From Schmidtea nova (lineage: Eukaryota), in NCBI GenBank assembly GCA_044892505.1, contig CM097882.1, positions 135,036,001 to 135,100,000 of the forward strand: 64,000 nt of DNA, in the 5' to 3' direction. This document shows positions 19,309 to 55,402 of this stretch, in pieces (positions within the stretch are counted from its first letter, which is position 1; the number at the start of each line of letters is the position of its first letter). Under the pieces are notes generated by a model, which worked only from the letters and a program-made list of their open reading frames with translations, was not told where the DNA came from and did not search any database. Made by a program: the position numbers and the translations under genes.

Positions 19309-22300
19309 GATACAAAGCTCTATGCGAATCATTTCAATGAAATTTTAAATGAAAATTACAATAGAGAGGAGTGTGTGATAGCCATAAAAAATCCTCGCTA
19401 TGTCACTATGGCTTATATTTCCAAGTAAACTTTGCTAAACTTTTATCTTAATCTCACCGAAATCATAAAGTATAACTGAAGAGCAAGCCAGTGAATTAGA
19501 ACTGACATTGCCAACCGATAAAACAATCACATCGGATTCTGACGACACTTTAAATGGAACGGACGACCTTTCTGAGATCAGTTTAATGTCTTTACCAGAA
19601 GAGAAGCAAACGAATAACAACAGGAAAATCGAAAGTGTCACTTTTGATAAAAAATATACATCTTCCTATCATCTCTATCTGAATGAATATTCAATCAAAC
19701 CGATGGTACAGACTGTAACCATAATAAAACCGAATCCTTTTACCGCCGAAGCCACAACAGATACGCAACTCATAGTAATTATAACTAATTACAAGTTAAT
19801 TTTAATTTTAATATGAATTAATGATTCAGAAAATTGAGTTGGAGGGTATTGAAACGATAATTATTAGAAAATCTTTCAAAGGAAGTGAAAATGACAAAAC
19901 AATAATTTATGGAATAATCAATGAATTTGGAGAGATTCGAAGTAAAATATATTTTTTCAGTTTCATATATTTTATGTGAACAGATATTTCCCAAGCAATT
20001 AATGAGAACATTTTACATGTGAAAGACGAATCGTTTTTTAATGGACAATCCGGAGAAGAAATAACTTGGGAAAATGCGTTTAGGGAAAACTATTTACTTA
20101 CAATTGATATTCCAGAAAATATATTGACAATGGAGAACATTAAATGTCTTCTGGCTGACCAGCTTCATTTGGATTTGCCCTTCCGAAATAAGGTAATATA
20201 TAAGCATTTCCACACGAGTATCCGCATAAATAAATAAATATATTTAATTAAGATATTTTTCCAAGACCTCCAAATAAGCGAGATTATAATTTGTAGCGCA
20301 ATATCGGAAAGGGAAAATTTCCGAACAATTATTATTGGCTGGCAAGGTCAAATTGGTGACGAAATTTTGAGTTAATACTATCTCATTTAGATTTTATAAT
20401 GATATGTCTGTTTCAGGTATTGAGGAGGCAATTGAAGAAAAGTTGATCAATGTGGAATATCAGACTTGTAGATGTGATCGAGAAAATAAAGATGAAATGA
20501 GTTGGAGAAACGCAATAGAAGAGAAAGTAATGATTGCCTGCGAAATCCGTAAAGACATGATGACAGCGGAATATGTGAAATGCCTAATAGAAAGCAACAT
20601 AAATGAATATATAAATACGGATGACATAGAAATCCTAGGAGCAGTTGATACATCGGATAATAAATTATTGGAAACGAATGAAGCGGTTGATAGGAAAGTA
20701 TTAGATTTGAATGGGCATTTATTTACGGATGAATTGAGCAATTGTGTGATGGGATTAAGGCAAGCAATTGATAATGGATTTGTATTGGCAAAGAAAAAGG
20801 ATGTTGATTGTGAATTACACCGAGTGCTTGTAGGGTCAGTGAAGGTAGGTAAAGGTCAAAATGAAATGAGCTTAGAAGAAGCAATAAAAGCAAAAGTGAT
20901 TGATCAATTAGAAAACGTATACAAAATAGAAGAGGAAAATGTAGAGATGCGAATAATGGATGCGATAATGTTGGGAATGATAAATATTGGAGAGAAAACG
21001 GAAGGAGAAGAATTAAGTTGTAAATCATTTGCAATTGTACAAAGAAAACCGAGCGATCCAGAAATAGCAGAATTATGTGAATATTCACCAAATAAAGCAG
21101 TGAATGTGAAGATCTTGTGCAAGGCCATTGAATGTGATTGCATGAATGAATTTGTGATTTGTGATGATGTGAAAGAAAGTATTGCGAAAAGCATATTCAA
21201 GAATCGTTTGGAATTAGATCCAATGATTTGTGATGTCGGTGAAGAAAAGAAAAGCATTCTGAAAGGATTTGTGAAAGGTTTGATAGATTGTGAAGAAATG
21301 AAACGGTTGTTAGAAAATGTGAAAGATTTATTTGTAGGAGAAATGTTAGAAAGGTTGGATGAAGATTCAAATGGTAAAGAAATCATTGAAGCGTTGAACA
21401 GTGCCGACATGAATTATCGGCTGGCGGAGATATTAATAATTGATGAAAAGGATTCCACGATAGAAAGCGTATCAAATATTGATGAGGGCGACGAGAACAA
21501 GAAATATAAAACAAAGATTAACGTTGATGAATTATTGAAAAATCTTAATCAATTGAAATGTTTTGATAGATTTGGAATGGACACGATTGAAACTGCAGTA
21601 ATTGGAAAGAAAGAAGATAGAAAGGAAGAGTTCGAGATGCCGATATTTGAATCAGTAATGAATGGGATGTTTAATTTGGACGAGGTGGAAATATTTGATG
21701 AGAAAGGAAGAGAAATGTGTTCAATGATTGAAAGTGTCTCACGAGGACTGATTGATGTGAAGGCAGCAGAAAGTATTTTGGATTGCTTAGAATCGCTGAG
21801 CTTTGAAGAACTAATAAAAGCTGGAATATTTGACATGGGAAATAATTGTTTTGATAAAACGTTGTCACTGGAAGATGCAATTGAAGAGGATTTGTTGAGG
21901 TCAGAAGTTGTATATTTGAATTTGTGTGAGGAGAATAAATTAATAAATTTGAGTAAAATGATTGAATGTGGAATGTTGAACGCTTCAGAAAATAAAGTGA
22001 AGATAGAGAAAAGAAATGGGGAAATAGTGGAAATGAAATTGAATGAAGCACTGAAGGAAGAAAACGGAATATTGTCAAGTGTTGTGAATAGTGAAGAAAT
22101 GAAAAAACAGTTTCCAAGAACGATAAAGTCTTTATTAGATAATCGGATAATAAACAAATATATGAATATTATTTTTGAAGAATCTGAAATAAAAGAAATG
22201 GAGATAAATGATGCTTTAGAGCAAAGCTTGATAAGCGAAGAGTGTTCCGTGTATTATGATGGGAAAGCAGCGGCCGTTTCATACTGCGGAGATAAAGATA

Positions 22301-22606
22301 TAATGAATCTACTAAATCTGTTGAATGAGTTGTCTAAATTCCTCAAGGAATATTTATTTGCTTCCAATTATAATAAAGATGATAAAATACTTTTTCAAGT
22401 AAATGTTGATCATTTGTGTCTAAAACTATTTTTTACTCTGATAAATTAAGATTTTGAGAGAAAAAATTGAAAATCAATTAAGAAAAGATAATAAAATCAT
22501 ACAAAAAGTTGGTGAGATCTTAAATTCAGATCTGAAAAATGATGTGAAACCTGAAATAAGAAATCTCAAATTAAAATATGATGAAGTAGACGAATTAATG
22601 AATGAA
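19309..22606 (+). CDS. Plectin/plakin-repeat-like protein, module 1: exons 19309-19424, 19471-19774, 19830-19941, 19984-20192, 20253-20370, 20417-22398, 22451-22606
   Basis: All introns are GT-AG and 42-60 nt, and the frame stays open through them. Recurring plectin-repeat-like motifs: SIEEAIEEKLI, GEEITWENAF, SLEEAIKAKVID, SMIESVSRGLIDVKAAESILD, SLEDAIEEDLL. The last exon is coiled-coil-like (ILREKIENQ...KYDEVDELMNE). Confidence 0.8.
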
Positions 22607-52600: not shown

Positions 52601-52901
52601 TTAACTAAATAAACTAATAATATGAAACAGAAATTTATCAATAAAAGATTATCAATAAAATGAATGTTCATTTAAAAAAAAAATATTTTAAATATTATCT
52701 TATATTTCTATATTTGTTAATTAATGCTTTTTTAATTGCCAAAAACTGCTTAAGCATTAAATTCAACCGTCAGTATTTTAATCAAAATAAAAATTCATAA
52801 TTTTTCCTATTTCCTTTTATCAATTTACGTGCAAATTATTAATAGTGAAAAATAATTGATTATTTAAAAAAAGAAAAAGAATTAAATACTAATTAATTTA
52901 G

Positions 52902-55402
52902 TTAAATGAACAAAGAAATTGTGACAAACTCCAAAATTGGTTTACAGTTCATTTTGGAACAAATACTCAAGTATTTTCTATTTGTTTTTAAAATCAATGA
53001 GACAAATTCTCGTAGAATCTTTTGGAAAATGTAGAAATCAGCAATGTGATAACATGCAATGCAATATCTGGGGATGAAAGCAATGCAACAGTTATTATTG
53101 GCGTGAGACTTGTAAATGATGATGCAATTCTTAGTAAACTTATTAAATATTTTATTTATAAAATTATATACATATATGCATCAGGTATTGAGGAGGCAAT
53201 TGAAGAAAAGTTGATCAATGTGGAATATCAAACTTGTAGATGTGATCGAGAAAATAAAGATGAAATGAGTTGGAGAAACGCAATAGAAGAGAAAGTAATG
53301 ATTGCCTGCGAAATCCGTAAAGACATGTTGACAGCGGAATATGTGAAATGCCTAATAGAAAGCAACATAAATGAATATATAAATACGGATGACATAGAAA
53401 TCCTAGGAGCAGTTGATACATCGGATAATAAATTATTGGAAACGAATGAAGCGGTTGATAGGAAAGTATTAGATTTGAATGGGCATTTATTTACGGATGA
53501 ATTGAGCAATTGTGTGATGGGATTAAGGCAAGCAATTGATAATGGATTTGTATTGGCAAAGAAAAAGGATGTTGATTGTGAATTACACCGAGTGCTTGTA
53601 GGGTCAGTGAAGGTAGGTAAAGGTCAAAATGAAATGAGCTTAGAAGAAGCAATAAAAGCAAAAGTGATTGATCAATTAGAAAACGTATACAAAATAGAAG
53701 AGGAAAATGTAGAGATGCGCATAATGGATGCGATAATGTTGGGAATGATAAACATTGGAGAGAAAACGGAAGGAGAAGAATTAAGTTGTAAATCATTTGC
53801 AATTGTACAAAGAAAACCGAGCGATCCAGAAATAGCAGAATTATGTGAATATTCACCAGATAAAGCAGTGAATGTGAAGATCTTGTGCAAGGCCATTGAA
53901 TGTGATTGCATGAATGAATTTCTGATTTGTGATGATGTGAAAGAAAGTATTGCGAAAAGCATATTCAAGAATCGTTTGGAATTAGATCCAATGATTTGTG
54001 ATGTCGGTGAAGAAAAGAAAAGCATTTTGAAAGGATTTGTGAAAGGTTTGATAGATTTTGAAGAAATGAAACGGTTGTTAGAAAATGTGAAAGATTTATT
54101 TGCAGGAGAAATGTTAGAAAGGTTGGATGAAGATTCAAATGGTAAAGAAATCATTGAAGCGTTGAACAGTGCCGACATGAATGATCGGCTGGCGGAGATA
54201 TTAATAATTGATGAAAAGGATTCCACGATAGAAAGTGTATCAAATATTGATGAGGGCGACGAGAACAAGAAATATAAAACAAAGATTAACGTTGATGAAT
54301 TATTGAAAAATCTTAATCAATTGAAATGTTTTGATAGATTTGGAATGGACACGATTGAAACTGCAGTAATTGGAAAGAATGAAGATAGAAAGGAAGAGTT
54401 CGAGATGCCGATATTTGAATCAGTAATGAATGGGATGTTTGATTTGGATGAGGTGGAAATATTTGATGAGAAAGGAAGAGAAATGTGTTCAATGATTGAA
54501 AGTGTCGCACGAGGACTGATTGATGTGAAGGCAGCAGAAAGTATTTTGGATTGTTTAGAATCGCTGAGCTTTGAAGAACTAATAAAAGCTGGAATATTTG
54601 ACATGGGAAATAATTGTTTTGATAAAACGTTGTCACTGGAAGATGCAATTGAAGAGGATTTGTTGAGACCAGAAGTTGTATATTTGAATTTGTGTGAGGA
54701 GAATAAATTAATAAATTTGAGTAAAATGATTGAATGTGGAATGTTGAACGCTTCAGAAAATAAAGTGAAGATAGAGAAAAGAAATGGGGAAATAGTGGAA
54801 ATGAAATTGAATGAAGCACTGAAGGAAGAAAACGGAATATTGTCAAGTGTTGTGAATAGTGAAGAAATGAAAAAACAGTTTCCAAGATGTTTGAAAGATC
54901 TGTTGACAAATGAAGAAGTGAATAAAGATAATGACATAATAATATTTCCTGGAACGAAAATAAAACCAATGCTGATAAAAGATGGATTGGAAAACAGTTT
55001 GTTGAATGAAGAATCAACGGTGAAATTGATAGAATGGAATTTGGAATCCGGAGTAAATGCAATGGAATACTGTGGGGATCCAGAAATTGCAGATCTCATC
55101 AATGATTTGAATGGATTATCAATAATTTTACCTGAAGTGTTGGAGAACTTGAGAAATGGAGAAAACGAAGATGTGATGAAAGTAAACGATAAACAAACGA
55201 TACATGAAATGATAATGATGAAAATTCTACTTAGATATTAGAAGCATCCGTGAAATCAAACTTAGATGAAGAAGTGAATTTATTCGACCGAATCAAAGCT
55301 TGTCTGCGTGACCACGCGAGCCATGACAGTGTTGATGAGGAGAGGCCTGGTGTAAAGGCGCTGAATGCAAAGTACGACGATGTTAGGTCTTTGTTAGAAG
55401 AG
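52902..55402 (+). CDS. Plakin-repeat module 5: exons 52902-52970, 53016-53133, 53185-55181, 55235-55402
   Basis: 69-nt exon LNEQRNCDKLQNWFTVHFGTNTQ. Introns of 45, 51 and 53 nt. 2352 nt. The large and last exons are near-identical to module 4. Confidence 0.8.

Follow-up and report, generated by a model that had tools for sequence, protein, structure and literature searches.

A stretch of 64,000 nucleotides from Schmidtea nova (assembly GCA_044892505.1, contig CM097882.1, positions 135,036,001 to 135,100,000 of the forward strand) probably belongs to a single large protein-coding gene on the plus strand, in which at least 23 coding exons are arranged as serial cassettes around diverged plectin-repeat arrays. 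We refer to the whole stretch as the window, and all coordinates below are positions within it. To our knowledge, the plectin-repeat regions described to date occupy one or a few giant exons, an arrangement that limits isoform variety and obscures evolution. Here, copying between cassettes is visible base by base, with what appears to be a fresh crossover and with a homogenized 0.73-kb tract lying beside old parts. If the cassettes are indeed spliced in series, the locus would provide a clean case of a giant cytolinker gaining and losing modules, and its charge and predicted packing question the usual view that such a protein binds intermediate filaments.

Exon model and reading frame

The window is AT-rich (approximately 27% G+C) and contains five long plus-strand open reading frames (ORFs), at 20404-22449, 26830-28782, 33165-35093, 40526-42664, and 53022-55241, which share 61 to 99% identity as protein. 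We rebuilt the exon model independently by reading the flanks of these ORFs in three frames and setting the exon ends by script. The resulting model comprises 23 plus-strand exons between 19309 and 55402, all 23 flanked by canonical AG and GT splice sites (Table 1), and its spliced length of 12,369 nucleotides (nt) corresponds to 4,123 codons with no stop by script count. The joined protein served only for this count of length and stops, and all searches and structure predictions were carried out exon by exon.

A cassette runs from a 69-nt exon through an exon of 118 or 121 nt and a large exon of 1982 to 1997 nt to a last exon of 156 to 168 nt. Module 1 lacks the 69-nt exon and begins instead with four lead exons of 116, 304, 112, and 209 nt. 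Modules 1 to 5 measure 2997, 2325, 2340, 2355, and 2352 nt, respectively, and every module border lies in phase 0. Introns are 42 to 60 nt long within modules and 3865, 3867, 5027, and 10076 nt long between them. The original prediction had likewise read the five ORFs as the large exons of a repeated four-exon unit, with phase-0 borders around modules 2 to 5 and approximately 4,120 open codons containing neither start nor stop; the rebuilt model arrives at the same module lengths, at homologous intron positions and phases, and at a closely similar codon count.

Stops make up 6.9% of the plus-strand triplets outside the model exons, and a large exon of 660 codons would therefore stay open by chance with a probability of approximately 1e-21. 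The corresponding figure for the small exons together is approximately 1e-25.

Plectin-repeat ancestry of the large exons

Scored against the Pfam Plectin model (PF00681; cutoff, 20.5 bits), the large exons of modules 3, 4, and 5 lie above the cutoff, at 29.2, 21.2, and 21.3 bits, and those of modules 1 and 2 lie below it, at 19.5 and 18.9 bits. A word search of 5.8 billion proteins returned a sole relative, P0001 (E 2e-20), which carries 18 Plectin repeats (E 5e-115) with a motif spacing of 27 residues and aligns with the large exon motif on motif. An exhaustive phmmer search with the module 4 large exon as the query gave 87 matches. These comprise one full-length relative, P0002 (44% identity over 664 residues; Plectin score, 40 bits), fragments at 38 to 55% identity, and, for the remainder, giant proteins at 24 to 28% identity led by P0005 (E 7e-42) and P0006 (E 2e-38), whose own Plectin E values are 4e-254 and 3e-278. 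Because these top matches are packed with Plectin repeats, we consider the plectin ancestry sound on sequence grounds and describe the large exons as diverged plectin-repeat arrays, as had been proposed from the sequence alone. Outside the close family, identity to plectin-repeat proteins is approximately 25%.

Searching solved structures in the PDB by sequence produced no match even at E 10. Domain searches detected no Spectrin, CH, GAR, or other domain in any exon, and exons 1a to 1c had no family match. A spectrin or other known domain in the 156- to 168-nt exon, considered as a candidate, was ruled out by the same searches. No further plectin-like exon emerged when all cassette parts and P0001 were compared with the rest of the window by tblastn, and an Rfam scan of the window gave no match.

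Each large exon encodes 17 to 22 cysteines. In module 4, a cysteine-bearing middle part with a C-x4-C-x-C motif occupies 41192-41779 of the window, with counterparts in the other modules, and nine cysteines are invariant across modules 3 and 4 and P0002. This middle part is unusual for plectin repeats and may bind metal or form disulfides.

Conservation of the cassette in relatives

The relatives available for comparison are metagenome contigs at only 44 to 47% identity. The contig encoding P0002 (L002; 3,034 nt, 27% G+C) contains a 69-nt exon (392-460) separated by a 50-nt intron from a 118-nt exon that ends in phase 1 (511-628); a 46-nt intron then precedes the large exon, and past an intron of approximately 52 nt lies a 156-nt exon (2730-2885) with GTAAGA at its donor. 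L005, the sole contig from the metagenome scan, shows the cassette parts that fall within its span. L004, from a third sample, covers the end of a large exon and, past a short intron, a 168-nt exon with GTACGA at its donor; no second cassette was found downstream within its 640 nt.

Between the window and these relatives, the exons align but the introns do not. W-F-x-V is invariant in the 69-nt exon, the 118-nt exon retains an A-I/L-S-G...T-x-I-x-G core, and the last cassette exon keeps its length and the final glutamate before the donor. The relatives retain the four-exon cassette with unchanged intron positions and phases, and the homology of intron positions first noted among the modules of the window extends to the metagenome contigs. 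Comparison of the back part of module 3 with the other modules yields a ratio of nonsynonymous to synonymous substitution rates (dN/dS) of approximately 0.19, with synonymous sites saturated, and by this measure the old parts of the cassette are under coding constraint.

L002 and L005 come from different sources and share 99.25% identity over 2.4 kb, yet protein identity falls to only 87% in their 118-nt exons, a contrast that resembles modules 4 and 5 of the window. The relative may also possess several homogenized cassettes.

Probable recent duplication and homogenization

A 6.33-kb unit at 20530-26862 recurs at 26863-33197 and in part at 33198-33926, with 99.75 to 100% identity that includes the introns. 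The second unit differs from the first by one mismatch over its first 2,145 nt and from the next unit by 8 mismatches, all between 27018 and 27576. At the diagnostic sites, module 2 is of the module 3 type up to 26925 and of the module 1 type from 27018 onward. Such a switch is the mark of a single unequal crossover, and module 2 would thus be the product of one very recent crossover of this kind between modules 1 and 3.

The same near identity, introns included, could also arise if the assembler had written the 6.33-kb unit twice, in which case module 2 would be unreal and the window would hold four cassettes. Two of the N runs in these units lie at matching places, and the region carries several N runs. 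We nevertheless regard an assembly duplicate as unlikely, given that the recombinant signature is clean, with a switch within 92 nt, as an unequal crossover predicts, and that sequencing depth over the shared front segment, although contig depth is a poor measure of copy number, points to more copies rather than fewer. The count of five cassettes in the original prediction overstates their independence, since module 2 either was copied recently and almost perfectly or was duplicated by the assembler.

Homogenization extends beyond this pair. The first 0.73 kb of the large exon is approximately 99% identical in all five modules, whereas the rest of module 3 has approximately 68% DNA identity and the small exons are 25 to 40% identical as protein. 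Because a tract of approximately 99% identity adjoins old and diverged parts, the alignment indicates that the front segment has probably been homogenized by gene conversion.

Sequencing runs of the source organism bear on copy number. Runs X1 to X4 contain 85 to 87% of the words of 36275-42950, and because these words include introns, the runs represent DNA. Single-copy contigs of X2 reproduce 35000-35399 and 37151-40513 unchanged, and the X2 contig stops at 40513, the exact start of the multicopy part. Over 40721-40999, an X2 contig reaches approximately 9 times the single-copy depth, and another, at approximately 6 times the single-copy depth (40600-40999), differs from all five modules at 40659, 40665, and 40702. 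Contig depth being a poor measure of copy number, the depth and the variant contig together suggest that further copies of the module exist outside the window.

On a smaller scale, a 219-nt unit is perfectly duplicated in tandem within an intron, at 25157-25594 and 31492-31929, and each copy of the 6.33-kb unit contains this tandem pair.

Predicted structure

The AlphaFold model of the module 4 large exon, built from a 37-row alignment, has a predicted local distance difference test (pLDDT) score of 87.8 and a predicted template modeling (pTM) score of 0.80; the model of a 246-residue part reaches a pLDDT of 91.4. At least 11 units of a beta-hairpin plus one short helix are predicted, mostly 27 to 31 residues apart. 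The unit of a plectin repeat has 38 residues, with a beta-hairpin leading into an antiparallel pair of helices. In every fold search, the best-ranked structures were the plakin repeat domains of desmoplakin and envoplakin (1lm5, 1lm7, 5dzz, and 4qmd). VIA-align gave Z scores of 2.3 to 3.7 over approximately 56 residues, the best being 1lm7 (Z 3.7; root mean square deviation, 3.2 Å; 56 of 246 residues).

The model predicts a helical conformation for the final 35 residues of the large exon, and the next exon may therefore extend a helical link. On this basis, the 156- to 168-nt exon, a putative coiled coil in the original prediction, may encode a helical connecting piece.

One gene or several

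ATG is absent from every 69-nt exon, and module 5 lacks it in both the 69- and the 118-nt exons. The 69-nt exon of L002 has a stop immediately before it. None of the cassettes terminates in a stop; in the window, L002, and L004, each ends at a conserved GT donor. Conserved exons without a start or a stop would therefore need coding partners both before and after them, for which the neighboring cassettes are the only phase-matched candidates in the window, and the cassettes would accordingly be spliced serially into one mRNA. The six N runs of the window all lie inside three long intermodule introns and touch no exon, the closest beginning 68 nt past the donor at 22606, and the reading frame is thus independent of them.

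An independent gene per cassette was rejected because the cassettes have no start or stop codon. The cassettes could still be separate tandem paralogous genes or transcription units if each had an unseen first exon and ended past its last donor. Such units would account for the large distances between cassettes (3.9 to 10 kb) and for the lack of RNA joins between cassettes over 35000-40999, and read-through of the last donor does meet a stop within 2 to 19 codons. We consider this arrangement quite improbable, as the protein sequence of the 69- and 118-nt exons is conserved although they offer no usable start, the L002 stop immediately precedes the 69-nt exon, the cassette-end GT donor occupies the same codon position in the window, L002, and L004, and the phases fit exactly.

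Read-through of the last cassette exon produces E-V-C-(S)-I-I-I-I at 22607-22633, 42826-42858, and 55403-55435 (modules 1 and 2 and modules 4 and 5), a tail that is absent from module 3, L002, and L004. The shared tail probably reflects shared intron ancestry, and intron retention could conceivably yield a short hydrophobic tail. The tails of P0017 and P0081 were checked as a candidate spliced continuation and look like intron read-through.

Several results weigh against reading the locus as a single long gene for a plakin-like protein. Neither gene end was found within the window, and its exons and long ORFs contain no plakin domain, in which an SH3 is flanked by spectrin repeats, and no CH, spectrin, EF-hand, or GAR part. 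Among the public RNA runs searched, the best contained 6% of the words of 36275-42950. On 35000-40999, the RNA runs X15, X17, and X18 gave no exon match and covered the repeat at 36311-36928 alone; this repeat explains the small word shares of the RNA runs, and the other RNA contig matches on the interval are chance matches of 21 to 35 nt. Further exons may be hidden in the N runs, and no bridge over the N run at 36115-36274 was present among the X2 contigs listed. Comparison of the models with plakin repeat domains by Foldseek gave E values of 0.06 to 0.3 and template modeling (TM) scores of approximately 0.2 (246-residue model versus 1lm7, E 0.063 and TM 0.20 to 0.21). The repeat unit appears recognizable in the model, but a compact plakin repeat domain of 4.5 repeats is not reproduced; the model is confident, and a two-repeat piece matches 1lm7 locally, with no match at the level of the domain. 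Lastly, each large exon encodes a net charge of -44 to -69 (isoelectric point [pI], 4.4 to 4.7). Envoplakin binds vimentin via a basic groove, which engages the acidic rod of intermediate filaments (PMC4782060), and the predicted acidic charge argues against that mechanism here.

The RNA results would also fit a silent or decaying gene remnant from which no protein is made. The large exon occurs in no indexed public RNA run, the transcriptomes X17 and X18 carry the neighboring repeat and no exon, and both introns and flanks are crowded with transposon remains. A remnant is nonetheless highly improbable in our view, since 12.4 kb is open across 23 exons, dN/dS between the old modules is below 1, and the exon structure and residues are kept in relatives at 44 to 47% identity.

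Proposed product and known systems

We infer alternative module use and function from the exon phases and the family, respectively. The product of the serially spliced gene would be a very long cytoplasmic protein with approximately 780 residues per cassette, in which rigid acidic plectin-repeat blocks of approximately 660 residues alternate with connecting pieces of approximately 115 residues. Each block would consist of about a dozen beta-hairpin-plus-helix units with a cysteine-bearing middle and would be followed by a short, probably helical connector. The many equal binding surfaces would create a multivalent scaffold or cross-linker of the epiplakin type, whose ligand need not be intermediate filaments. 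The array would grow and be homogenized by recombination between cassettes. The phase symmetry would permit whole-cassette skipping and thus length-variable isoforms; by their phases, the 69-nt or the last exon might also be left out individually, and the 118-nt and large exons only together.

The closest known architecture is that of vertebrate epiplakin (EPPK1), which offers many equal binding surfaces for keratins, has no plakin domain, and has its coding sequence in a single exon and hence no alternative splicing (PMC8782857). Like epiplakin, the locus consists within the window of repeat modules and connectors only, with near-identical copies and a copy number apparently in flux (PMC8782857). 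Unlike the single exon of epiplakin, it is divided into 23 exons, four per cassette, and its modules of approximately 780 residues are strongly acidic and are not modeled as canonical plakin repeat domains.

Among invertebrates, the nearest counterparts are found in spectraplakins (Drosophila Shot-PH, MACF1, dystonin, and Caenorhabditis elegans VAB-10A), whose giant-exon repeat regions share with the locus a long plectin-repeat array in an invertebrate cytolinker. In contrast to their giant exon, the array here is split into cassettes, and the CH, plakin, spectrin, EF-hand, and GAR parts of spectraplakins have no equivalent in the window. The Shot repeat region (approximately 3000 residues) is one exon between the plakin domain and the spectrin rod and is independent of cytoplasmic intermediate filaments (bioRxiv 10.1101/122010), so that a different ligand is conceivable here. 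The plakin repeat domains B and C of desmoplakin and that of envoplakin resemble the locus in being top ranked for both models and in superposing on a two-repeat piece, but they differ in the lack of a domain-level match, in the predicted hairpin plus one short helix, and in the acidic charge here versus the basic groove of envoplakin.

The locus differs from the repeat regions of epiplakin and spectraplakins in cassette structure, unit geometry, and charge. We propose tentatively, and with more doubt than conviction, that it represents a previously undescribed plakin-related, repeat-only family in AT-rich invertebrates, with a conserved phase-0 four-exon cassette in place of a giant exon, a module number driven by ongoing unequal crossover, cassette-skipping isoforms, and a partner other than intermediate filaments.

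Table 1. Model exons, duplication units, and N runs in the 64,000-nt window
Feature	Position(s)	Strand	Remarks
Exon 1a, module 1 lead	19309-19424	+	116 nt, phase 0 to 2; AG acceptor, GTAAAC donor, open; no upstream in-frame ATG
Exon 1b	19471-19774	+	304 nt, acidic, Ser/Thr-rich; no family match
Exon 1c	19830-19941	+	112 nt
Exon 1d	19984-20192	+	209 nt; resembles start of large exon (blastp E 8e-9)
Module 1, 118-nt exon	20253-20370	+	Phase 0 to 1
Module 1, large plectin-repeat exon	20417-22398	+	1982 nt
Module 1, 156-nt last cassette exon	22451-22606	+	Phase 0 to 0
Module 2, 69-nt exon	26472-26540	+	Identical to module 3 copy
Module 2, 118-nt exon	26583-26700	+	
Module 2, large exon	26750-28731	+	Chimera: module-3-type start, module-1-type remainder
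Module 2, 156-nt exon	28784-28939	+	
Module 3, 69-nt exon	32807-32875	+	
Module 3, 118-nt exon	32918-33035	+	
Module 3, large exon	33085-35078	+	1994 nt; back part approximately 40% identical to other modules
Module 3, 159-nt exon	35136-35294	+	
Module 4, 69-nt exon	40322-40390	+	Covered unchanged by single-copy X2 contig
Module 4, 121-nt exon	40436-40556	+	
Module 4, large exon	40608-42604	+	1997 nt; query for searches and folding
Module 4, 168-nt exon	42658-42825	+	
Module 5, 69-nt exon	52902-52970	+	
Module 5, 118-nt exon	53016-53133	+	
Module 5, large exon	53185-55181	+	1997 nt
Module 5, 168-nt exon	55235-55402	+	Last exon in model; GT donor, no stop
First unit of 6.33-kb tandem duplication	20530-26862	+	
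Second unit of duplication	26863-33197	+	Partial third unit, 33198-33926
Putative crossover (or mis-join) interval behind module 2	26926-27017	+	Diagnostic sites switch between 26925 and 27018
Three N runs, module 1-2 intron	22675-22803, 23198-23342, 24245-24390		
Two N runs, module 2-3 intron	29529-29677, 30580-30725		
One N run, module 3-4 intron	36115-36274		Flanked by very high-copy repeats

Repeats and transposon remains around the exons

X2 DNA around the N run at 36115-36274 has a contig depth of 2,400 to 47,000, compared with approximately 45 for single-copy sequence. Directly after this N run lies a repeat of approximately 460 nt (36311-36766, minus strand, extending up to 36928), for which the X2 depth is 30,000 to 47,000 versus the same single-copy value. 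The repeat also occurs, with two letters changed, in RNA contigs of 483 to 485 nt from X17 and X18, which are labeled as different organisms. One X2 contig of single-copy depth links 35757 with 36998, apparently omitting 1,240 nt that include the N run; this junction may reflect a polymorphic insertion or a replaced stretch.

The intercassette introns are full of transposon remains. The 10-kb intron contains a gag zinc knuckle (47669-48004, minus strand), and remains of a hAT-like transposase (DUF4371, E 5e-21) occupy 16269-18569 directly upstream of exon 1a on the same, plus strand. Downstream of module 5, integrase-like and Tc1/mariner DDE and helix-turn-helix ORFs lie on the minus strand, at 57001-57588 and 58040-58789. 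A reverse transcriptase ORF (6055-8652, minus strand) is located between repeats at 5898-6462 and 8896-9464.

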